From Lepidodermella squamata (Eukaryota > Animalia > Gastrotricha), in the NCBI GenBank assembly GCA_047495785.1, contig JBLDXI010000012.1, forward strand, positions 434,001 to 498,000: a stretch of DNA of 64,000 nt, read 5' to 3'. The notes under the pieces were generated by a model. It was given only the letters and a program-made list of their open reading frames with translations, searched no databases and had not been told where the DNA came from. Positions 10,089-51,012 of this stretch are shown here, one piece after another; the first letter of the stretch is position 1; each line of letters opens with the position of its first letter. The position numbers and the translations under genes were made by a program.

Positions 10089-11456
10089 TTCAAAAAAGCG
10101 AAAAAGCAGCCGGGGACTCCGTTTTAAAGCCCTGGCAAAAAATCTAGCAAAAGGCGTAAATTGTTAGTATCTGCAGCATAAGCAAGCAAAATATAACACA
10201 GATTTAAATATTATTCAGGACAATTAAATATTGAATCTCGTGCAAGGATTTGAAAAACAGCAAAAATCATTGTCCCTACACACTGATTTCTGCGATATAA
10301 AAACTGGGTCAGATGTTTAAAAGGCAATGAACGCAATACGGCCAGAGAGATGTATTGGTGTATGAACATACTATGCATTTTCTTAGTAAGCTATCAGCCG
10401 GCAACACGCAGCATACGGCCGCCGGGCTGGCAAAAAAATGAACGGGAACTTTGAGGACAGGTTTGCACGTTTTTGCGTCTCGGCAAAATCAACAAATCTC
10501 GACCGGAAATCGTTTTCTTTCCATTAAAATAGGGTATAAATAATTATAAATAGTTCATAATAATTTCAAAAAAATTTGCCGCAGTAGATAAAAATTGTGC
10601 CGCGAAATTGGAAAACTTTGGCATGCGCGCGCGATGTCTAAATGCGCGAGATGCTCGGCCCTCCCATCTACTCCCGTCTTTGACGCCACAACGTACTGAC
10701 GGGTTTCCCAGAACGAGGTATGAATCAAGTGTCAAGAACAAGACTATAATTTGTAGAAATGTCCAATCTGGAACAGGTAACTCATAAGTTCATAAGTAAC
10801 CCTTGCCGAGCCGAATAGGAATTGTGTAGTCTATTTCCTCCAGACGGTAATTCTTTTTGGTGACTGCTACAAAACTTTTACAAACGTGTTCACACATTTA
10901 CAGCTGCTTACATCGCAGCTTCTTTTACTATCGGCATTATTCTACTTGATATCAGAGCTTAGCTGATTTCGATACGTTTTGTGGTTTGTAACTGATGTAT
11001 GACTGAGGGTTTAGTGTTACAGCCCTCTTTTCAATCCTCATGTCATGCAGCATCGAATTCGATTTTCGGCTTCTTCGAGAACCAAGCATGTTGTGAATGG
11101 GGGCGAGTTTTTATAAGGCTGAACGCTGATTCAAGACGGCTCGATGTATTAACTCAGTAGTGATCCAAATGCGGTAAAAAATACCCAATTTGTTGAAAGG
11201 TTTTCTCTTCGAATTTACCCAAAACTATCGTCTAATGATTGAAAAATTGCTTTGAAATTTGATTGCTTAATCCCGTACTACCTGAAGCCGTATCAGCTGT
11301 TATTTTTTTTGATGCGGCCTCGCTGGTATTTGCGATTTTTCGCACTGTAATATCTTGTATACCTACACCTTTCATTACACTTCATTAATTATGTGTATCA
11401 TCAGCGTTTAAGTAACGGACAATGAGTTTGTATTATTTTCCATAGTTGCCGAAACA

Positions 11457-36275: not shown

Positions 36276-36719
36276 TTATTGAGACTGGCTGGCGGCGGCC
36301 TTCTTCTTGCCACCCGAAGCCGGCTTGGCAGCGGGTGCCTCGGCGGTCTTCTTCGGCAGCAAGACGGTCTGGATGTTGGGCAGAACACCGCCTTGGGCAA
36401 TCGTAACGTGCGATAGCAGCTTGTTTAACTCCTCGTCGTTGCGGATCGCCAGTTGGATGTGGCGAGGCACGATGCGCGTCTTCTTGTTGTCACGAGCGGC
36501 GTTGCCAGCCAACTCGAGCACTTCAGCGGCCAGGTATTCCATGACGGCGGCGAGGTACACGGGCGCACCCGCACCGACACGCTCGGCGTAGTTACCGCGC
36601 TTCAACAGACGGGTGATACGACCGACCGGAAACTGGAGACCGGCACGCGACGACTTGGTCTTCGCCTTCTGGCGGTTGGCCTTGCCTCCCTTACCACGAC
36701 CGGCAGCTGGAGCGGACAT
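36276..36719 (-). CDS. H2A: Histone H2A with extended H2A.X-like C-terminal tail ending SQSQ
   Basis: [31 protein letters not shown]; tail [16 protein letters not shown]. Confidence 0.97.
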
Positions 36720-37101
36720 TTTTGTTGTTTGAGTTTTAAAAGCGGAAAGAATGCGAAATTTGCAGTCTGAGCACGAACAATTTTGCCGACACCTGATTTT
36801 TCCTTATATACCCCGCTTTGGCATTTATTTCGCGCCTTTCGATTGTCTTTTGAAATTCGTATAATCTGTTTACGGCTTTATTAACCAATCGAGTCGTAAA
36901 AGCGCGCGCCTCATTACGGCACACGCACCAGTTTGATTGGTCACCCAGGCACGCGCCATAAATAATTTGAACACCGGATGCGCCAGGGTGCGCGCACTAA
37001 TGCCGGCCGGATGTTATAATGATAGCGAAATTGCGTGCATCGGTGTTCGGAAGCTCATAATAATTATTCGCTTGTCAAATCTCGCTTGATTTCAATCGAT
37101 C

Positions 37102-37476
37102 ATGTCGCCCAAAGTTACTGGTAAAGTCGCGTCGAAGGGTTCGAAGAAGGCCGCGAAGCCGAAGACCGCAGGCGAGAAGAAGAAGCGCCATCGCCGCCGC
37201 GAGTCGTACAACATCTACATCTACAAGGTGTTGAAGCAGGTTCACCCTGACACCGGCATCTCCGGCAAGGCCATGGCCATCATGAACTCGTTCGTCAACG
37301 ACATCTTCGAGCGCATCGCCCTCGAGTCGTCGCGCCTGGCCCACTACAACAAGAAGGCCACCATCAGCAGTCGAGAGGTACAAACGGCTGTGCGTCTCCT
37401 GCTGCCTGGTGAGCTCGCCAAGCACGCCGTTTCAGAAGGTACCAAGGCCGTCACCAAGTACACCAGCTCGAAATAA
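37102..37476 (+). CDS. H2B: Histone H2B
   Basis: [42 protein letters not shown]. Confidence 0.99.
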
Positions 37477-37553: not shown

Positions 37554-37648
37554 CACAAGTGCACAGAAACAAACACGGATTACCAAATAAAACGTTTTAT
37601 TTTTCTTACAAATCGATTTCGTACAAAATTAGATTCCTAAACCATTGC

Positions 37649-38226
37649 CTATTGAATTGGCAGCGGGCGACCATTAGGGTTGTTGAGGGCGACGAAACTG
37701 GTCGAAAGAGCGTTCAATACATGCCATGCCAAAATAGGAAGCATCATTTGACCAGCGAAAACTGAAATCGAATGAAAGGCGTAGTAACAGCTAGCGGTTG
37801 ACATAACAAGAAGACCGGATGTAACCGCGGCACCTCCAAACCATCCGTGTTCGAAGAAGAGCATTCCGAATAAGCGGTTAAGAGCCAAATTGACAAAGTA
37901 GAAAAAAGCCGGCATGGTGATACTCGTGTTTTTCGTCGCGTGCTGATACCAAATCAGGTAGGACGACGTACCCATTATAATGTAGACGATCAGCCAAACG
38001 ATTGGGAAGAGCCAATCAGGAGGCATCCACCTAAACAAAAAAACGTTATTACCCACTAAAATGAGGATGAAATAACTTATCATGGCTTTTTGACGCGATG
38101 GTACCAACTCGGAATCGCGAGATGACTACCGATAGGAATGAAACCGAGAAACAGCGGCAAGGCAATACAGAAGATGTAGGCCACAGTCGCCACGAGCCGA
38201 TTAACCGTGTAAACTTCGATGGTCAT
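37649..38226 (-). CDS. TSPO: TSPO paralogue T1 (divergent; intron 38031-38080 has an AT donor, possibly a pseudogene)
   Basis: WYHRVKKP..WMPPDWLFPIVW, hydrophobic helices, terminal NNPNG shared with the other copies. Confidence 0.75.
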
Positions 38227-38393
38227 AATTATTCCTAATTAAAAAAGATTAATTATCAAATTTTATTGCAAAGACGTGGTTGCACATGAGCCCTAAACTG
38301 TTGAGGAAGATGGGTTTCCAAGATTCAGTTTATTTCAGATGATTACTTCTAAAATTTGATGTTACTTTAGCAATAAAAGTGATGTAAAAATTG

Positions 38394-39073
38394 TCAAAAA
38401 AGAGGGCGGCTGTCATCGATAAATTCTGACTCGAAGCCTTTTCCGCTATTCGGATTGTTAATAGCGATCCAAGTGTTGATGACGAATTCCAGAACCAACC
38501 AACCGGCGTATGGCATCATCATGAAAGAGGCTACTCGCGAGATACGGTAGAACAAAATGACACAGGCGACAACAGCGAACCAAAGCAGGCCAACGTCGGC
38601 AGCGGCGGCTTTGAATAGTTGATGGCCGAAAAACAGTTGCGTGTAAGTGCTGTTCAGAACAAGCGTGACGACGTAGGATAGAGCGGCCCAACTAATGTCA
38701 GCCTGATGCTTCGAGTGATGCCGCCAAACCAGGTACGAAGCCATGCCACAGGCGAAGTAGATGAAGGTCCACATCGCGTGAAACAACCACTGCGGCGGCA
38801 TGAAACTAATAACAAAAACTAGGTTAAACAAAATCGCAGAAAATTGTATGCTTACGTTGGCTTCTTGAGACCGCCGTACCAATCGGCACGGTGAGCAAGC
38901 TGATAGCTATTCCAGCCGAGGAAAAACGGAAGCGCCATGCAGATGATGAACGCCGCCATGCAGCTTGTTCGCGAAGTTTTGCGTGGTAGCTGTTGCTGAT
39001 GAGCGACAGGGCTGAAATGCGGCAACATCGGCGTCATCGAGTTGGCTAACAACTGTTGCTTCATAGGATCCAT
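38394..39073 (-). CDS. TSPO: TSPO paralogue T2; intron 38806-38855
   Basis: WYGGLKKPTFMPPQWLF, MPYAGWL, NNPN. Confidence 0.88.
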
Positions 39074-39158
39074 GATTTTAGCAATAATGTGAAATGATGA
39101 GCTAGTTGTAATTCAGTCGGAAAGATGTGAATGCTCATTTACTGCTGCGTTTTTCAGC

Positions 39159-39187
39159 TTTATAAGCATAAGATCACGATTACGTCA
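39159..39187 (-). promoter_or_regulatory. Putative promoter of TSPO T2: TATAAA plus CRE/bZIP-like TGACGTAA
   Basis: Minus-strand TATAAAG at ~39158-39164 and TGACGTAA 39180-39187, about 90-110 nt upstream of the ATG. Confidence 0.45.
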
Positions 39188-39366
39188 CGCTGTTCTGTTT
39201 CTTTTAGACTCAATCGACCTTGTTTCGTAACAAAACAATGCAAAAAATCTTGAAAATTATTTTAATTATTTTTTTGATGCACTCATAAAAAACGACTTCG
39301 CAAACGCAGTTCGTTCGCAGCTGGTACGATGTTTCCTGAGAAAACACTATAACCCAAACTAATATA

Positions 39367-40255
39367 CCGTAATAAAGTGGTATGTTGTATGGGGCTACTT
39401 GAACGGGAAAATACTTTTCCGAAGCTAGCCTGTAGCTGTAGAACTTCAACTCCACAAATTTTATATCAGAATCATATCGCTTAATTGTCGAGGTTGAACC
39501 CCGATCGTAAACCAATGAAATCAACCCGTTCTAACCTAGCGATCGGGACCAAATGGCCGCATGACTATCTCACTCGAAGATGAACCATATATGGCACAAA
39601 TTAGGACGATGAACCATCGCCCACCTTGCGATACGCGCAAATTTTAGGTAGCATTTTCCACTTAAAAATCGGCCAAGTTACACCTTAAAATGCAGGTGAC
39701 TAATCTCTTGATACCGGCAGCAGATTTCCAATTCCAAGGTGTCTCATTCGATAGCTACCATTGAGAGGAATCTGTTGGTGGAAACGCTTATTGTACCATG
39801 GCCCCTAAATCCCCTAATTTCCCTAAATTAGCGTTCAAAATCTCGAGACCTAAAATCGATCGGCTGATGAAACCAATCGATGAAAATCGGAGATCACTTT
39901 TCGAATGCGGATAAATGGCGGTTCTAGTATCATTGTAGGAAAAGACATTCGATTTTGATTTTGATCGCATGGATTCCTTCGGTTACTCGCCTTGGATTCG
40001 GTACTCACCAAAATTCTACCGGAAATCGAACTTGTAAAAAAATTTCCCCCTAACTTTTCCCGTTTTTTTTATACTTGGTAATATGTTTCATTGGTGTAAA
40101 TTTTACACATCTAGGCCTGGCTTTCCTTGGGCTATCCAGCGGTATCCCACTCATGGGGTCTTTACCTTGCCGGCTTCGATAATTTGAGTGGCCAAAGTCA
40201 CCCCTTTTTGACATGTCAAAGTCACACCACTGTGCAAAGTCACCCCAAATTACGG
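39367..40255. mobile_element. Decayed non-autonomous pogo/Tc1-mariner-like element
   Basis: TA|CCGTAAT ... ATTACGG|TA termini; right end has three CAAAGTCAC(C/A)CC direct repeats (40193, 40217, 40235). Left boundary is weak. Confidence 0.5.
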
Positions 40256-40645
40256 TATATACACTTAAATGGGAAGTTGAGAATGTAATAGGGAAGTTGA
40301 GAAATTAAAGTTAAAAAGTGGAAAAATCTGTGTTTTTTCTTGGAAAATATGTGCTACAGAATGTTCCCGCTGCAATTTTTTTTCAACAAAAATCGCTGTC
40401 ATTTTTTATGTAGATTCGGCGACGAGGTGACTATTATCTGTCGCTTATTTCCGGTAATATGGTTCAGAAAAACTCTCATACAATATTCCATCTAAGCCAA
40501 ATTTTATTTGAAAGTGTATAAAGATTGTTCCGAATTCCAAGGAAATGAAAGCAAGTACAAATTACCAGCATTATTGCAGTAAACAAAAACAAGAGATTTA
40601 AGCATGCTTTAATACAAGCTGCTATAAAAAAGAAATTATGACAGG

Positions 40646-41284
40646 TTAAGGAGCATAACTCGGAGGTGCGTTTTGATTTTTGCCGTCCGGATTGTATATC
40701 ACAATGTAAACGGACAGCGAGCAAGCAATAGCCAGCCAGATCACGTAGGGAAACAAAAGTCCAGCAGCGATTCTTGAAACACGCCAAAATAGGACAATAC
40801 AGGCAACAACAACGATTATCAGCAGAATAATATCAACAAGACTCGCTACCAGCCAGCCCTTGCCAAAAAACATGGGTGTCCAAATGCCATTGAGCATGAG
40901 AGATACGGCGTAGACCAGCAGTGGGATGGTCACATTCGCGCCGTTTCGCACGTGGAAGAACCAGAGTAAGAAACTAGCGACGCCCATCAAAACGTAGAGT
41001 AAGGTCCAAACGACGGGAAACACCCAACCAGGCGGCATCCACCTTAATTACAGGGAAAATAATTAATTTTTCGATTTTTATGAAAAAAAATCAACTTACG
41101 GAGGCTTATTGATTCGTTTATACCAATCGTTGTCTTCAGTTCGGCCAACGCTTGTCGATCCGATGAAACCAATCACATTAGGGAAGGCGATCATAACAAT
41201 CGCAACTGCAACGGCGATGATTGGATTAACAGGGTATCTGCGCGGGCGGTCATCAGATTCATTTGCAATTTTTCCAGACTCCAT
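40646..41284 (-). CDS. TSPO: TSPO paralogue T3; intron 41043-41099
   Basis: WYKRINKPPWMPPGWVFPVVW, WTPMFF, FPYVIWL. Confidence 0.93.
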
Positions 41285-41401
41285 TATATCAAAATAACTA
41301 AGGATAGATTAGGAAATAATCAAAAAATATTTAGTGAAAATTCGATAATAAAAAACAACAATTTTTCAGTTCATATTGCGAGAATTCTTGAATAAAACCG
41401 G

Positions 41402-42031
41402 CTAATTTTGGCTTGGGCCAGTCGTCGTCGTGTCAATAAATAAACCGGGCTGATTTTTGCCGTCTTTGTTGTAAAGAGCCAGGTACGTGTTGAGCGAAAT
41501 AGCAATACACAGCCAAATCGCGTATGAAATCATCATAATACCAGCAGCGAGCGAGATTCGCCAGAAGAGCACAATGCAGGTGATCACAGCGAAAAACAGC
41601 AGAATCAAATCGGCGAGGCCGAGTTTGAACCACGCGTTGCCGAAAACAATCGGCGTCCAGTAGCCGTTAAGCAGAAGTTGAACGGCGTAGACAACAGCGG
41701 GTATCGTGATATCAACGCCCCGCCTGACGTGATTGAGCCATAGGAGGAAACTCGCCGTTCCCATGAGAATGTACAAAGTCGTCCAAACAACACCGAAAAC
41801 CCAGCCGGGCGGGGTCCATGGAGCTTTTTTGATGTGTTTGTACCAGTCTTGTTGCGTCACATCGCCGGTAGATAGCCCGCCGATGCCTCCGATAGCCAAG
41901 GGGTAGCTGATGCAAACGATCGCAACAAGAACGGCGAGGCAACAATTGACTTTCTTCGGACGAATATTGGGCGTGGACGCCGAAATTTCATCAGAAAATT
42001 CATTCTCGAGCTTGATTTTATCAGAATTCAT
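41402..42031 (-). CDS. TSPO: TSPO paralogue T4, intronless
   Basis: WYKHIKKAPWTPPGWVFGVVW, WTPIVFG. Confidence 0.93.
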   Translation of the reverse strand: MNSDKIKLENEFSDEISASTPNIRPKKVNCCLAVLVAIVCISYPLAIGGIGGLSTGDVTQQDWYKHIKKAPWTPPGWVFGVVWTTLYILMGTASFLLWLNHVRRGVDITIPAVVYAVQLLLNGYWTPIVFGNAWFKLGLADLILLFFAVITCIVLFWRISLAAGIMMISYAIWLCIAISLNTYLALYNKDGKNQPGLFIDTTTTGPSQN

Positions 42032-42191
42032 CTTTCAACATAAATTCTATAGGTAAATTTTAGAAATAAGCGAATAGGAATTTTTTCTTTGGTTTCTATG
42101 AACGATTTATGGGAAATTCACAACGACTTGATTTCATTGAGATTTTTCTCGAAAACCAACAAATTAATACGAAAAAACAGGCAGTGAGAAC

Positions 42192-42728
42192 TCAATTTGA
42201 TTTCTTTTCCTTCGGAATTCCATTCGGATTCTTGATTGCGATGTAGAGGTTCAACGTAAAGGCAAGAGATAGCCACGCGATGTAAGGTATCAATAAATTA
42301 GCGGCAGTTTCATTAATCTCTCGAAATTTGATGAAACTAGCAACTGCAGTTGTCCAAATGGCGACAATGTCAATAGCGCCAAGCCAAAATCGACCGGCGC
42401 CGAAAAACAGCGGACCCCAAAGGCTGTTGAAAACCAAATTAGCCGCATAGGTAGCCAAAGCGATTTGAACAGCCTCGGTTTTGTCGTCGTATTGGCGAAC
42501 GATTAGGAAGGACGAAGTGCCCATCAACAGGTATAGGATAGACCAAACCGGGCCGAAAACCCAATCAGGAGGATTCCATGGGGCCTTCTTAATCCTTTTG
42601 TACCACGTATCGATGGCTTTCCAGTTCATTTTTGAGACAGCGCTCGGGAAGAATCCGATCCCGAGAGGTATGCCAACGCATGCTATCCATAGTAGGGTGA
42701 GACAAAATCCAGTGGTACACTCTGTCAT
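42192..42728 (-). CDS. TSPO: TSPO paralogue T5, intronless
   Basis: WYKRIKKAPWNPPDWVFGPVW, IPYIAWLSLAFTLN. Confidence 0.95.
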   Translation of the reverse strand: MTECTTGFCLTLLWIACVGIPLGIGFFPSAVSKMNWKAIDTWYKRIKKAPWNPPDWVFGPVWSILYLLMGTSSFLIVRQYDDKTEAVQIALATYAANLVFNSLWGPLFFGAGRFWLGAIDIVAIWTTAVASFIKFREINETAANLLIPYIAWLSLAFTLNLYIAIKNPNGIPKEKKSN

Positions 42729-42890
42729 AATTTAAAGCTCTAAAATAAATAACAAAAAATTAAAGAAGGAAATTTTCATTGAAATTAACAAGAAAAAACA
42801 TCAAGACATACAACAAGGCAAAAAAGCACAAGCTAATGAGATAATAACAAAGGCAGTTAGGGAAGATCTGAACCGAAACCAGATACTTTT

Positions 42891-43469
42891 TTAATTCGAC
42901 TTCTTGCTTTGGGGAGCCCCATTCGGGTTATTGATGGCAACGTAGAGATTCAGTGTGAATGCGAGGCTGAGCCATGCGATGTATGGCACCAATAAATAAG
43001 CAGCGATTTCATTAATCGCTTGAAACTTGATGTAGCTGGCTACGGCAGTAGCCCAGATGGCAGCAATGTCAAGCGCTCCGAGCCAGAAGCGGCCATGGCC
43101 GAAGAACAGCGGAGTCCAGATGCCATTGAAAAACAAATTGGCCGCGTAAGTAATCAGGGCGCATTGAACAGCTTCAGTTTTTTCGTCATACTGGCGTAGA
43201 ACCAGGTAAGAAGCCGTTCCCATTAGGATGTATAGAACAGTCCAGACAGGGCCGAAAACCCAGTCAGGTGGGTTCCATCTGTAATAAAGGATTATTTCAA
43301 CAAAGCTAATAGTAATTTATTCAAGCACTTACGGAGCCTTCTTAATTTTCTGATACCAGGTCTTGACTGCATCCCTGGTAATAGTCGAGCCGTGGAATCC
43401 CATACCGAGAGGAATGCCAACGCAGGCCATCCACATTAAAGTTAAGCACCAGCAAGTGCAGTCAGACAT
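42891..43469 (-). CDS. TSPO: TSPO paralogue T6; intron 43279-43332
   Basis: WYQKIKKAP|WNPPDWVFGPVW, WTPLFFG, VPYIAWLSLAFTLN. Confidence 0.95.
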
Positions 43470-43752
43470 TTTTAATGTTTCACTATTAAAATAATTCGTA
43501 TTGATTGAAAATAAAACAATTCATTTACCTCAATCAAAATAATTCAGGGTGAATACTCCCATTTTCTGGGGTGACGTTAAGCGAAAATTTAGCGAGAGCA
43601 AGATTTTCACAACGAGTAAAAGATTGCATCGAAGAAAAGCACCGCGAAGATCACATATACGAAAAAAAAATTCAGAAAAAATAGCAGTTTCAAGCTGTTC
43701 AATCGAGAGAAATCTGTCAAAACAAATCAGTAGCCAGTTTTTAGACAAGCCA

Positions 43753-44277
43753 TTAAGTAGTTTTCTTGATTGGCCGAGGCCCATTCGGATTCGCGATAGC
43801 CACGTAAACATTGGCCGTTGACCCAATTGTCAGCCAAATCATGTAAGGAATCAGAAAATACGGGGCATATTCATCGACTTCCGCGTATTTGACCATGCAC
43901 AGGGCAGTAGTTATCCAGACTCCAATAATGTCAAATGAAGCCAGCCAAAATCGGCCCAAGTAGAAGTAAAAGGTGGTCCAAATAGCTTGGAGAAATGCAT
44001 TTACAGCATAGATAGTCAAAGCCGCCTTAACCAATTCGGGTTTTTCGTTGTATTGACGAAGGACAAGGAAAGAAGCGGTACCAATGCAAAGATAGAGAAT
44101 GATCCAAGCCGGCACATAAGCCCAGCTTGGAGGTGCCCAGGGTGCTTCTTTCACTCTGTTTCGCCATGTTTTAAGCGAACCTTTAGCTATCTGCGCTCCG
44201 ATAAATCCGCCGACCAGTGGCACAGCAACATTGGCCAGCCAAAGCAAGACCTGCTGATATATGGGCCACCCAATCAT
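43753..44277 (-). CDS. TSPO: TSPO paralogue T7, intronless
   Basis: APWAPPSWAYVPAW, IPYMIWL; first ATG at 44277. Confidence 0.92.
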   Translation of the reverse strand: MIGWPIYQQVLLWLANVAVPLVGGFIGAQIAKGSLKTWRNRVKEAPWAPPSWAYVPAWIILYLCIGTASFLVLRQYNEKPELVKAALTIYAVNAFLQAIWTTFYFYLGRFWLASFDIIGVWITTALCMVKYAEVDEYAPYFLIPYMIWLTIGSTANVYVAIANPNGPRPIKKTT

Positions 44278-44356
44278 TTCTACTTTAATTTCTCTAGTCA
44301 GCAAAAAATAATCAATTTTAAAGCGATTTTAGGCCGGAAAAATAAAGAAATTTGAT

Positions 44357-44977
44357 TCAATTTGCTTTTTTCACAGAGTCTTTCGAAACGGCAGGGTTAT
44401 TGATGGCCATGTAAAGGTTTAAAGTGAGCGAAAACGTTAGCCAGGCTATATAAGGCACCAACAAATAGGCAGCAGTCGTTGAAATCGGGTAAAACAGAGC
44501 AATTGTTGCAGCGATTGTTACCCACAAAGCGAGCAGGTTGAACAATGCCAGTGATAACAAGCCTTTCCCGAAAAATAGGAAGTTCCATAGCAGGTTCAAA
44601 AACAAACAGATTGCGTAAGTAATAGCCGGCAGGGTAATACTAACGCCATTGGATGCATGCTCATGCCATACTATATGAATCGAAAATCGGTGGTTTTCGT
44701 TAATTAGATTACTTCGTTAATTAATCACCTAAATACGATGCGTAGCCAGATGTTATGTATAAAGGCATCCAAACTACAGGGAACACCCAGTCCGGAGGAT
44801 TCCAGCTAAAATAATAAATTAATTTGTGCTTGTGAGATAAAATTAATAAAATTACGGAGCCTTTTTAACATCTTTGTACCACGTTTGTTTAGCTTTCTTA
44901 CTGGATTTTCCATTGATGATGCCAATGATAACAGGAAGCAAAACAAACGCGGCAAGTGTGCACGTATCGCAAGTCAT
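44357..44977 (-). CDS. TSPO: TSPO paralogue T8; introns 44806-44855 and 44671-44728
   Basis: WYKDVKKAP|WNPPDWVFPVVW, VPYIAWL. Confidence 0.92.
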
Positions 44978-45155
44978 TTTGCAAAATATGTTAATAGCAC
45001 CTATCCAGAAAATAGTATGGGGTCTTTAGCAATTGATTAAAAATAACGAATCACTGAAAAAGAATACATGGAAGAAGCGGCAACCGAGTATTCAAAATAA
45101 TTGACACCGGAGATCGATAATCAGAGGGAAGATTTGAAAACTCGAAACCAGAGTG

Positions 45156-45768
45156 TTATTTTTGTTTATCTCCAGTTTTAGGAATTCCATCGTTGTGAAG
45201 AGCGACGTAAACGCAGAGGGTTGTAGCCAGGGTAACCCAAAACATGTAAGGCGACAACAAATAGGCAGCTGTTGCCGAAATCGGATAAAATAAGACGATG
45301 CAGGCAGCAACAGATACTCCCAATAGAAAAGAGACAATTGTGGCCAATTTGAAATACCCCCAGTGGAAGAATATTGGAATCCAAATCAAGTTGAAAAACA
45401 GGCTGGAAATGTAGGCGATTGACGGCAACGTAATGTCAACGCCGTGTTTGCTATGCTCTTGCCAAACTAATTGTCAAGTACTCATTAGCAATATTTATCA
45501 AAAAGACAGTTTCTTACCTAAATGAGTGGCATAGCCAGAAGTTAGATATATTATAAACCAAGCAACTGGGATAACTTTCTGCGGAGGATGCCAACTAGAA
45601 AATTTGATTTTTAATTTCAATAATAATCCTAATTCTTTGAACTTACGGTGCCTTTTTAAGATCCTTGTACCACGTTTTTGTAGCTTTCGATGTTAATCCA
45701 AAACCTGACCAGCCTAGTGCAAAAGGGACGAGAATGTGGGCGGCCAAAGACCACGGTGAATCAGTCAT
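45156..45768 (-). CDS. TSPO: TSPO paralogue T9; introns 45595-45646 and 45467-45517
   Basis: WYKDLKKAP|WHPPQKVIPVAW, WIPIFF, SPYMFWV. Confidence 0.9.
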
Positions 45769-45980
45769 TTTGTCAAGGCAAAATATCTAATAAATTATAT
45801 GTAAGAACTCATTGCCTTTACTTTAAATAGAAATCATCACTCTTCTTATAGTATAGGCCCAAGACAAAATTCAGAAATTAAAATCGGCAGTTTTATAGCA
45901 AGATATCATTGAAGACGATCAAATAGGAAGACGATTGTCAAAATGTCATGAAATCAAAGCGCAAAAATTATTAGCAGTTT

Positions 45981-46549
45981 TTATGATGACTTAGCATGAG
46001 GTCCATCAGGATTGTAGACTGCGATGTAGAGGTTAAGCGTAAATGCGAGCGAGACCCACGAGATATACGGTATCAACAAGTAAGCCGCAACAGTTGAGAT
46101 CGGGTAGAACACGATAATAGAGCCTAAGATGGTTAACCAGAGCACTGCCATTTCGGCCGCGGCGGTTTTAAACATGCCGAACCAAAAGAATATCGGCGTC
46201 CATAAGGTGTTCAGCACAAGACTTGATCCGTAAACAACAGCTGGTAGGGTGATATCAATCTTGTGTTCATTGTGTTCGCGCCATATCAAGAATGATGAAA
46301 TGCCCATAAGTGTGTAGAGCGTGGTCCAAACGGGGCCAAACACCCAATTCGGAGGATTCCATCTGCAATACAGAATTATCAACAATGCTGTATATTTTTT
46401 CATAGAGCATAATGTGCTTACGGAGCGCGCTTAATGCGTTTATACCATGTTTGAATGGCGCCTCTCGTTAAAAAAGAACCGCTAAATCCGATAAATAATG
46501 GGATGCCAATAAAACCAGATAGAGCGACAATTTCGTCATAAGACAGCAT
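45981..46549 (-). CDS. TSPO: TSPO paralogue T10 (first in transcription order); intron 46363-46421
   Basis: WYKRIKRAP|WNPPNWVFGPVW, WTPIFF, IPYISWVSLAFTLN. Confidence 0.95.
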
Positions 46550-46691
46550 TTCCAGTGACAAGAAATAATTGAACAACAAATATATAAAATCTACGGAAAA
46601 ATAAGCTTGTTGTTATTATGATGTCAAGTAAGAATAATTGCTTTTCTCCCTCAAGTGTGCAGTTCTTTAGTGTTAGCGCCAACCGTCTCGC

Positions 46692-46699
46692 CTTTTATA
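46692..46699 (-). promoter_or_regulatory. TATA box upstream of the TSPO array
   Basis: Minus-strand TATAAAAG about 145 nt upstream of the T10 ATG. Confidence 0.5.
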
Positions 46700-49274
46700 T
46701 CCTTACACGGCCTTGATAACATGGACACCCCTGATACTTGAGACACATGCATTTACTCTGCTGTTTGCGTATCAGCTGCATGCATTACGAAATACGCTCG
46801 TTCATATCACATAGTCCAATGCAGGCAAGTATATTTATACTGTTTTTGTTCCGTACTATTTTTTGCCATTTACGTGATGGGGAGAAACGAGTAAATGGTG
46901 GCTGAAAAAATCCCCGGGAGCAAAGTGCGCGATCTACCTATTTTGTTTGCTTAGCTCAAATCAGAAAGACGCCACATATCTAATTAAAACAAGGCGTGCC
47001 GTAAAATGATAAAAATCCTAGTTTTCATCGCAGGACATACGCGGGACACAATTAAGGTCACTGTAGTATCTCGCGATGAAAATTAAAATGTCTATCACTG
47101 TCGTGTGGCTCTATTGTTCGTTCATTTTAGCAAAACCCACTTGGAAGAGAATAGTCCAAGTTTTGAGTGGTATTATTTGGATCACAACAAATTCGTGCAT
47201 CAACATTATTGCACGCTACTTTTTCTATGAAGTTGTACTTTAGAAATTGCTCGAATACTTTTCCATCGTAACTAACGGATGTGCCAAATTTATCCACGAA
47301 TAGGAAGCACAAATCCTCCAAATTAAACGAAGCGAGCTGAAAAAAACAAAAAATGAACGTGAGAAATAGAGGTTAGTGATTGATGCCCAAGTCTGATATT
47401 GAGGTGTTTACGAAAATACCTATCAACCCGTTTATTAAAGGCATGATTGCTTTTGCATAGAAAAAATATAATGAAGTTTTGACATTCATTAACATGTTAA
47501 TTATTTTACAGCCGAACCAAGCCATCATTTTCTCAAATATCAGCAAAAAAATCAAAATTTAATCAACAGGCTTGTTTACGTTATTAAGGTTATTAAGGTT
47601 ATTAAGAACGTTTTGGTTGCGGAAAATATCAATATTACCTGTTATCTTGCGAAAGGAAGCACGGAATTTCTAAGCACGACGTTTCACTTCATGCAAAAGG
47701 AGGCCGCTAAAGTTGACGACGTTCTTTCATGACTCACAATCTGCTGCCCTTTCCCTCATTCAGGGCGGTTCCCCGAAATGGGCAATCAAGTCAGGCATCT
47801 CAGCGTCTCCGGTAGTATAGTAACGATCAATGATCATCAGCACTGATAAATCTGTTTATGCATCTTAGCTCTTGACTGAGCAATTTCGGGAAGGTGAAAA
47901 GAGCTCTGCTGATGTGTGTTATATACATCTGTATAATTAGATGAGATACCAGTCTAGTGGATGCAGTAAAATAGTATCAGAATACTAGCAGACTAGTTTT
48001 TCACTCCGAGGAGTTCAACAGCCGCGCGAGCAGTTCGACCAGCTTGAGGAAAGAAGGATGTTTGATAATAATCACCGACCGTCGGTGGTACTGCTGGCTA
48101 TGCACCCCTTAGCACCCGCTACGATCACATGCAAGAACAGCAACTTGTAATGTCCAATGAAGCGAATGGCCATTGTTGTAACAGTCTCAAATCTTGGAGT
48201 GAAGGTTTTAGCGTATCATGGATATCATACACAGCCGCCTGAGCTGTTTCCGGTGATCGAGAAGAGTCCACGCCGCTTTGGGCAGACCATTAGTAACGCA
48301 GCTAAAGGCTATAGAATTAAATGGGTAACATATAAAATTATCATCATCAGATAAGGCTGTGCCAAAAGAACTGCTGTGTCCCAGTAAACACGGCCGAAGA
48401 AAACTTACCGCGCAAACGCGCGAAACTAATTTAAATAATGTTTGGAAACTTTGTTAAAAAATTACACTGTACATTTTATTTGCGTTACTAGAAATAAATG
48501 TTTACAAATGTGATAAACGTTCTAACTCGCAATATTTTTTTGGTTTTTTTTTTTGATAACTTTTTTCGTGATCTCGAGTATAGCACCATTTCAAGTTTCA
48601 AGCTTGTTGAATGGGACCTGAACCTTGTATTCTGTATTCCCAGGGCAGATTGCCGGAGACCTGGAGTTTGTTAGGAAACCTTAAAACTTGTGAAAATCAA
48701 GTTTTATTTCTCAAAAATCGTAACAAATACGTAATGGTAACCACGCCTTGTTCGAAGCTCGAATCCTACCAAATCTTTCATGCCACCATATTCATTTTAT
48801 CTATTAAAACTGGCTCGTTAAAGCCCGGGGTGCACCTTTACCCCAGTGTTTAATGTTCAATGGTCAGCCCGCGAAACGGGCATCGATCAATAGCGCCCTC
48901 CTTGAACTTTGAAATTCATCATTTTGATTTTACGCAATAGCCTTGTTGCTCTAAAAGAACGCCTTTTGCTACCCGTGACCCCTATACCTGGTCCTATTTG
49001 CAGCGACAGAGCCGTGTATCCCGACAATAAGCTCAAAGCTCGAAAGTGTTTTTTCTTTCATTGATAGTTGATAGATTGCTCGATTTATGCTCGATTATTG
49101 CAATGTCCGAACAGGTTTTCTCAGCGATCGCTTTTACCTATACTTCCTCTAATGCTGTGTACTGCGGACTAAACTTGGTTAATGCACACAATTTTCCTGT
49201 CTACTTGTTACCTACCTGTCGCATTTTCTAGCTTATAGACAACTATTATCTAAAAGCGCGAGAACATTTATAAA

Positions 49275-49915: not shown

Positions 49916-50013
49916 AATCCAATTGTGTCGCTCATACACAAAATTAATCGAACTTTGTGCCTTTAAATAATTTACTAAACATTTTGTTTTGTATTAGATA
50001 GTTTTACTTTGCT

Positions 50014-51012
50014 ATGTCCGGGAAGAAATCTGGTGGTGAGGAAGCGGAGCCGTCTGATCAGTTTGACGGATCTGATGTGGAACAGTCTGAAGATGTTTCA
50101 GAGGTTGAACAAAGTCCTGGAAATATGTCTAGCGACGGCGAAAATGCCGTGCGTCAGCGCCGCAACCAGTCCGGTGAAGAGGAGTTCTCCGATGGTGGCT
50201 CACCTTTGCCCGCTAACAATGATACAGATGATGAAAAGGGAAAAGTAAATGTTTTTTTCTGGGGCGTTGTAGCTCTTGTTATGGCTGTCGGTTTGCTTGG
50301 TTTGTATTACGCCGGCCAACCCGATAGCCCTGCTTCATCCCACCCGCTCATGGCTGACGTCAGCAATGTGATCAAGAAATTCAACTTATCTGCGTCGGTT
50401 AATAAAAATATGATGGCAACGTTCAGTGAGATGATTGAAAGCCAGCGACCCGTCGTTGTTTTTGTTGCTTCATCGGAACCCGGCCACGTCAACCCAGCTG
50501 TTACTCAGTGCCTTTTCAAGTCACTTATTCGTAAGTTTAGCGATCACTACAAGCCCAAAAGTGAAGCGAAGAAGATCGACCTTCGAAATTCGCTCACTTC
50601 GATCAAGGAGAAGTGCACTGAAGGCGATGTTTCGCGTTGTGTTTCGAATAAATTTATCGAGTTGTTTAAAACTTCGCTTGAAAACACCAAAGTGCTGTGG
50701 ATTGATGGCTTGGAAGCTTTGAACTACGATCCTGGACTCATTGTATCGATGAACAGCTTTGCTGACCACAGCGAAGCCCCGGTTAAACAATCTTTGATTT
50801 TCATTACCGCCAACTTTGAGGGTGATGCCAAGAAGCCGATTACCACTGCTACAAAGTCGTACTTCCAAAAGATCTGGACCAAGAATTCAAAGGGGTGCAA
50901 AGTCGGTGATATTTCTTGCATGACCACCGACAATTTCCATGCTGTTTGGACTCGCATTGGCGAGTTTGTGATCGACGCTAAGGGTCTTTCAAGCTTGCCA
51001 GACTTTTGTTAA
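50014..51012 (+). CDS. TOR1AIP: Torsin-1A-interacting protein-like (LAP1/LULL1), type II membrane protein
   Basis: Acidic N-terminus, one TM helix, luminal AAA+-like domain with RPVVVFVA, FADHSEAP (cf. YCDHENA) and VWTRI (cf. LWSRI arginine finger). Confidence 0.75.
   Translation: MSGKKSGGEEAEPSDQFDGSDVEQSEDVSEVEQSPGNMSSDGENAVRQRRNQSGEEEFSDGGSPLPANNDTDDEKGKVNVFFWGVVALVMAVGLLGLYYAGQPDSPASSHPLMADVSNVIKKFNLSASVNKNMMATFSEMIESQRPVVVFVASSEPGHVNPAVTQCLFKSLIRKFSDHYKPKSEAKKIDLRNSLTSIKEKCTEGDVSRCVSNKFIELFKTSLENTKVLWIDGLEALNYDPGLIVSMNSFADHSEAPVKQSLIFITANFEGDAKKPITTATKSYFQKIWTKNSKGCKVGDISCMTTDNFHAVWTRIGEFVIDAKGLSSLPDFC

Follow-up and report, generated by a model that had tools for sequence, protein, structure and literature searches.

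Operons resolved by a spliced leader (SL) that is added in trans are known from nematodes, flatworms and tunicates. In the SL2-type operons of Caenorhabditis elegans, the genes lie on one strand across U-rich spacers of about 100 nucleotides (nt), a 3' splice site without a donor stands shortly before the ATG, and transcription starts at one upstream promoter with optional internal promoters. Flatworms such as Schistosoma mansoni and Macrostomum lignano, which form the likely sister phylum of the gastrotrichs, use a single type of SL, and in the tunicates Ciona and Oikopleura one leader serves to resolve operons and also to cap monocistronic genes, and the first genes of operons may be trans-spliced as well. 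Outside the animals, the tandem arrays of kinetoplastids (e.g. tubulin) consist of paralogues that are co-transcribed and cut apart by SL addition. Here we analyze a 64,000-nt stretch of DNA from the gastrotrich Lepidodermella squamata (the window; contig JBLDXI010000012.1, or C12, positions 434,001-498,000, assembly GCA_047495785.1; coordinates below are window positions) that holds ten TSPO genes, T10 to T1, arranged head-to-tail on the minus strand from 46549 down to 37649. The array resembles the C. elegans SL2-type operons in its single strand, its T-rich short spacers and its predicted 3' splice sites before the ATGs, and we propose that it would likewise be read from upstream promoters. 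We put at about 0.5 the probability that it consists of two operon-like units, T10-T3 and T2-T1, which are resolved at unpaired acceptors by an SL.

An earlier note on this DNA, made from its letters, had described the array as an eight-gene and a two-gene polycistron made entirely of paralogues, and the family assignment holds throughout. In searches with single exons, each of the ten units was recognized by the Pfam TspO_MBR profile (PF03073), with scores of 66-145 bits where the cut-off is 24 (E about 1e-18 to 1e-42). A genome-wide scan of the assembly, which comprises 121.2 Mb in 151 contigs, revealed an 11th TSPO copy off the array (G000:C60:378535-378897, minus strand, 101.8 bits). Most animals have one or two genes of this family, which is known to bind sterols and porphyrins; eleven copies in a small genome, ten of them in one array, represent a marked family expansion. 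Given that the array paralogues are just 31-77% identical to T5, the array is old. The published L. squamata genome paper, which reports 122 Mb in 157 contigs, mentions neither trans-splicing nor operons nor TSPO (PMC11660948).

The spacers between the genes, all of which are on the minus strand, are short. From stop to ATG they measure 212, 178, 79, 283, 162, 160 and 117 nt from T10 to T3 and 167 nt from T2 to T1, and T makes up 37-52% of their sense strands; the lengths in the earlier note matched exactly on a script check, and its description of the spacers as T-rich was borne out. Operon spacers in Caenorhabditis have a median near 100-112 nt (PMC7986045), and for candidate operons of S. 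mansoni the median and mean intercistronic distances are 99 and 233 nt (PMC12582326), all of which fall within the 79-283 nt found here. The array spacers therefore fit the operon sizes of both groups, whereas those of tunicates are much shorter, at about 1 nt in Ciona and 31-57 nt in Oikopleura (PMC7986045).

A predicted 3' splice site precedes every downstream open reading frame (ORF), 8 of 8. In T9, T8, T7, T6, T5, T4, T3 and T1 a TAG preceded by a pyrimidine tract places its G 18, 23, 16, 13, 11, 15, 13 and 8 nt before the ATG, respectively, and all eight G positions given in the earlier note proved to be right. The eight spacers, 1358 nt in total, contain 13 TAGs; eight of these fall in the zone 5-30 nt before the ATG that makes up 15% of the sequence, one per spacer, and in four spacers the TAG in the zone is the only one. 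Just 6 of 20,000 composition-preserving shuffles placed a TAG in the zone of all eight spacers, so that with 8 of 13 TAGs in 15% of the sequence their placement is not due to chance. The 17 nt before the TAG sites contain 8-14 pyrimidines (mean 11.3), compared with 7-13 (mean 10.1) before nine intron acceptors of the TSPO genes. As far as the sequence can tell, these acceptor-like sites resemble the genome's own 3' splice sites and form a statistically real signal. In 4 of the 8 spacers, those before T8, T7, T4 and T3, there is no donor-like motif with which the predicted acceptor could pair.

The individual sites, all on the minus strand, differ in their surroundings. Those of T9 (45787-45789) and T8 (45001-45003) are the sole TAGs of their 212-nt and 178-nt spacers, although the T8 spacer also holds a second strong acceptor-like site, a T-tract followed by CAG, with its G at 45054. 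The T7 site (44294-44296) lies in the shortest spacer, of 79 nt, and the TAG of T6 has its G at 43483. At T5 (42740-42742), T occupies 14 of the 17 preceding bases, and at T3 (41298-41300) the site is the sole AG counted in a spacer of 117 nt. The sites of T4 and T1 are at 42047-42049 and 38235-38237.

We also looked for such sites elsewhere in the window. They are absent from the H2A/H2B histone pair and from four tandem peptide genes, where spacers range from 345 nt to 2.4 kb and are longer than most array spacers. The same T-tract and TAG, 11-18 nt before the ATG, occur at a BARD1-like gene with RING, ankyrin and BRCT domains (11446-11456) and at the ORF at 50014-51012 (49996-50013), and T10 itself has a tract and TAG 41 nt before its ATG (46591). 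The TAG motif is thus a genuine signal, gene-specific and of the 3'-splice-site kind, that is not confined to clustered genes. Because T10, the first gene of a related species' array (B1, below) and non-clustered genes carry it, the site would mark trans-splicing or a leader intron in general, and not operons per se.

Start and end signals would divide the array in two. A TATAAAA box lies 150 nt before the T10 ATG (46693-46699, minus strand), and the 3.3 kb upstream of it contain no minus-strand ORF of at least 130 amino acids (aa) and no ORF at all above 110 aa. The first canonical hexamer after the start of T10 that is not inside a leader is an AATAAA 137 nt past the T3 stop (40503-40508, minus strand). 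After a T3-T2 gap of 1.4 kb, in which terminal repeats are absent and the repeats present are short and due to chance, a TATAAAG box stands 91 nt before the T2 ATG (39158-39164, minus strand), and a further AATAAA follows the T1 stop at a distance of 47 nt (37596-37601, minus strand). Between stop and next acceptor, T10 to T4 have neither AATAAA nor ATTAAA; the two ATTAAA words in the block lie past the acceptors, within the leaders of T7 and T6. The lack of a canonical polyadenylation hexamer from T10 to T3 suggests that read-through of this block is likely.

This differs from C. elegans, where upstream genes have an AAUAAA before the spacer. In SL2-type operons that signal lies about 100 nt before the downstream trans-splice site, an arrangement that is absent from T10-T4 and found only for T2. 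Kinetoplastids couple polyadenylation to the downstream acceptor and do not need AAUAAA, and coupling of this kind would explain the missing hexamers in the array. Yet kinetoplastids are protists that throughout their genomes have no promoters for individual genes, whereas the array has TATA promoters and ordinary introns. Gene content also sets the locus apart. Nematode operons mostly combine unrelated genes and flatworm operons are mostly pairs of unrelated function, whereas here up to eight genes would be joined, all of them paralogues; nor is a split like that between SL1 and SL2 in C. elegans known here.

A similar layout is found in a related species, in which three ENA metagenome contigs (L002-L004; L003:9800-14260) carry five TSPO genes, B1-B5, flanked by a sulfite-oxidase-like gene and UBR4. 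B1-B4 are separated by 155, 172 and 152 nt, and each of them has a long T-tract and TAG 15-27 nt before its ATG. None of the spacers before B2, B3 and B4 (0 of 3) contains a donor-like motif, the three inner spacers contain no TATA word, and no canonical hexamer precedes an acceptor within B1-B4, the one ATTAAA lying past it in the B4 leader. B4 is followed by an AATAAA, a gap of about 690 nt, a TATAAAA, B5 and a further AATAAA. In a maximum-likelihood tree T10 groups with B1, T4/T3 with B3/B4, T2 with B5 and a gene of a third species (C1), and T1, on a long branch, with another gene of that species (C2). The grouping of T9/T8 with B2 (and T10/B1) is weakly supported (Shimodaira-Hasegawa-like approximate likelihood ratio test, SH-aLRT, 48), and T7/T6/T5 form a separate clade. 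The order of subfamilies is collinear in the two species (T10 with B1, T9/T8 with B2, T4/T3 with B3/B4, T2 with B5) at cross-species protein identities of 36-57% (T10-B1 57%; T2-C1 56%), and the flanking genes differ. We take this to indicate that the subfamily order, the close packing of the block, the interruption ahead of the T2-type gene and the predicted signals all predate the split of the two species.

The third species is represented by a JGI contig of 1599 nt (L005, from sample 3300043825) that contains C1 and C2, intron-less orthologs of T2 and T1, 209 nt apart, with a T-tract and TAG 22 nt before the C2 ATG. It begins 44 nt before the C1 ATG and ends about 50 nt past the C2 stop, in a fold-back, and these limits roughly coincide with the predicted ends of the unit. 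L005 looks as a spliced dicistronic RNA would, and we lean towards an RNA origin for it. Its 5' end was considered as a conserved leader and dismissed, since nothing in the genome matches it. Unrelated organisms are the source of the other short TSPO contigs (L167-L169, L177). The ENA samples that yielded the array of the related species also contain a GALM-SIRT5 gene pair of that species (L094-L097).

From the gene models, the signals, their non-chance placement and the conserved layout we infer co-transcription and trans-splicing as follows. RNA polymerase II would start at the TATA promoter before T10, and likewise before T2, and would read through the whole block, since the inner spacers lack a canonical polyadenylation signal. 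Each downstream ORF would then be freed by splicing at the unpaired acceptor that lies 8-23 nt ahead of its ATG, most likely through an SL added in trans, as in the operons of nematodes, flatworms and tunicates. There may be extra internal promoters, for instance in front of T9 or T6, as in the 'hybrid' operons of nematodes. More tentatively, we hypothesize that the array comprises paralogue-only operons of eight and two genes that grew by tandem duplication inside the transcription unit, kept their order since before two gastrotrich lineages split, and are SL trans-spliced with polyadenylation coupled to the downstream acceptor and not to AAUAAA. An operon-like unit of paralogues only and its conservation across species are new here. 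If the hypothesis is correct, the array would clearly exemplify the growth of an animal operon through duplication of the genes within it, with fixed co-expression of up to eight versions of a membrane protein; Gastrotricha would join the phyla with operons, and an animal would form 3' ends without the canonical hexamer.

Several observations weigh against two SL-resolved units. The earlier note had listed TATA boxes before T10 and T2; both are there (TATAAAA at 46699, TATAAAG at 39164), but a perfect TATAAAA, possibly an internal promoter, also lies inside the T10-T9 spacer (45891-45897, minus strand, 129 nt before the T9 ATG). The AATAAA signals that the note had placed after T3 and T1 are likewise present (at 40508 and 37601), but it had missed two in the T2-T1 spacer (38262-38334, minus strand; at 38334 and 38267, 96 and 29 nt before the T1 acceptor). 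With these hexamers behind it, T2 could be a gene separate from T1. The division into an eight-gene and a two-gene polycistron is supported by the hexamer-free block T10-T3 and by its recurrence in the related species (four-gene block, AATAAA, gap, TATA, one gene), and called into question by the two AATAAA of T2-T1 and the internal TATAAAA. The acceptors lack a donor in the spacer for at least T8, T7, T4 and T3, but the TAG of T6 could pair with a GTAAAT 46 nt upstream. Acceptor-like sites also occur at T10, B1, the non-clustered BARD1-like gene and the ORF at 50014, the T1 donor is non-canonical (AT), and without a canonical hexamer the 3'-end formation of T10-T4 is unexplained. L005 may be DNA, and intron loss is common in the TSPO family. 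We found no RNA of the array TSPO genes (exact and homology look-ups, closest match 57% identity) and no SL RNA gene (Rfam SL1/SL2, donor plus Sm site, promoter patterns of small nuclear RNA (snRNA) genes, ribosomal DNA (rDNA) spacer). On sequence grounds T2-T1 is the weaker half, since AATAAA signals occur within it and T1 has an AT donor, yet it is the sole half with possible transcript evidence, namely L005.

As the main rival reading, the genes could be trans-spliced but monocistronic, each driven by a separate compact promoter that lies in the spacer or within the 3' end of the preceding gene. The TAG sites would then accept a leader or end a short outron on separate precursor messenger RNAs, and the tight spacing would stem from tandem duplication in a compact genome. 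The TATAAAA at 45897, the TATA-like words that the AT-rich spacers offer, the sites on first and non-clustered genes (T10, B1, BARD1-like, ORF 50014) and the AATAAA of T2 all suit such an arrangement. We nevertheless consider it unlikely, as spacers of 79 and 117 nt leave scant room for a 3' untranslated region and a promoter, T10-T4 have no canonical hexamer to end separate transcripts, the three inner spacers of the related species lack TATA words, and order and tightness are conserved at 36-57% protein identity. It would seem improbable that the TAG sites are ordinary cis acceptors used with no SL at all, either in short leader introns with donors in the spacers or for a common upstream non-coding exon joined to alternative genes. 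A donor within the preceding coding sequence would yield out-of-frame or truncated products, and the spacers before T8, T7, T4, T3, B2, B3 and B4 hold no donor-like motif, even though weaker donor-like words are present in the T9, T5 and T1 spacers and the T6 leader contains a plausible mini-intron of 46 nt (43483-43528, minus strand; GTAAAT donor at 43528), near in size to the 50-59-nt introns of T10 and T1. The account to which we give the least credence is that the motif is no splice site and instead belongs to a core promoter or initiator from which very short leaders would arise, or is a conserved translation context passed on at each duplication. While this would account for a motif that stands close to the ATG at a fixed distance in every copy, first genes included, the accompanying 10-17-nt pyrimidine tract is indistinguishable from the tracts of real acceptors. 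Moreover, three species share the motif although their spacers cannot be aligned, and it is missing from the histone genes, whose promoters are clear.

The transcript searches covered the array genes and other genes of the genome. Exact look-ups with the intron-less T5, T4 and T7 returned no transcript, and neither a word search with T5 nor a profile search with the ten paralogues gave anything above 57% identity, the best protein matches (52-57%) coming from other species. A metagenome scan with a T5/T6/T10/B1 profile gave no match above 48% identity, most matches being similar to bacterial TSPO. No transcript from L. squamata was retrieved when the two histones, ten further intron-less proteins and a GALM gene were looked up by exact match, and our literature search found no paper on trans-splicing in Gastrotricha.

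For the leader itself, the SL RNA of Schistosoma is 90 nt long (PMC7986045). The Rfam SL2 model had zero matches in the genome, and that of SL1 gave a false weak match to a 29-nt satellite only. The satellite (L006, G000:C29:3415414-3418513) extends over more than 2.6 kb with a unit of about 29 nt (…CTGTCGCTTGAAGAGAAA…). Two donor-based candidates were rejected: GGTAAGT followed by AATTTTGG is an intron inside a repeated gene, and GGTAA followed by AATTTTTGG belongs to a transposon family. Seven contigs (L170-L176) carry a dispersed repeat of more than 447 nt, about 92% identical and probably a transposon, which contains GGTAAG followed by AATTTTTGG. From 20 U1 and U2 loci (L102-L121) we derived an snRNA promoter element, GCATATGCAAAT, about 64 nt upstream of the genes, but a search for this element combined with a 3' box or donor found no SL-like gene in the genome. 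There are at least 42 U1 and at least 47 U2 genes, many of them preceded at about 64 nt by the common GCATATGCAAAT element and followed by an A-rich box. Repeats of about 90 nt near U1 genes turned out to be transfer RNA (tRNA) genes; tRNA genes of the leucine type lie close to several U1 genes. The rDNA spacer contains a repeated promoter-like element and no convincing SL RNA. The rDNA unit (L101, G000:C2:2909700-2918400) is about 8.46 kb long, with a 5S gene on the opposite strand in its spacer; a 26-nt element that precedes the 5S gene has a second copy in the spacer at a distance of about 525 nt, and nothing recognizable follows that copy. Overall, the SL RNA pattern searches gave only the satellite, copies of repeats or transposons, tRNA genes and some unrelated singletons; the negative carries little weight, as neither the Sm site nor the promoter of a new SL RNA is known.

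The start and stop codons of all ten genes, which lie on the minus strand throughout, were checked by script. T10 (45981-46549), the first gene of the eight-gene block, has one 59-nt intron (46421-46363) and matches PF03073 with E 2.5e-35 on exon 2; its ATG begins at 46549, not at 46548. T9 (45156-45768; E 3e-18 on the last exon) and T8 (44357-44977; E 2.5e-20) have two introns each. T7 (43753-44277; E 4.6e-33, full-length match), T5 (42192-42728; E 1.4e-42) and T4 (41402-42031; E 2.9e-38) are intron-less. T6 (42891-43469; E 6e-36), which is 77% identical to T5, T3 (40646-41284; E 3.5e-31), the last gene of the block, and T2 (38394-39073; E 6e-27) have one intron each. Seven genes share a common intron position directly upstream of a W-x-P-P motif, and the second intron is found in T9 and T8. 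T1 (37649-38226; E 1.2e-22) has a single intron of 50 nt (38080-38031) that starts with ATAAGT, not with the GT that had been ascribed to it, and ends with a normal TAG. We read this junction from the sequence and checked it against the intron-less ortholog C2 (KKPWW motif); unspliced T1 would run into an immediate TGA, and the frame is otherwise intact. T1 may be a dying gene, have an odd intron or reflect an assembly error.

Directly after T1 lies a divergent H2A/H2B histone pair (36276-37476). The H2A protein has 147 aa and a long tail that is rich in alanine and lysine and terminates with SQSQ, and a protein identical to the H2B is encoded on an ENA freshwater metagenome contig (L001). Finally, a Logan contig of 4104 nt (L093, SRR24204725) carries an ammonium-transporter gene, an unknown gene and a GALM gene on one strand, 41 and 59 nt apart, in an operon-like arrangement.

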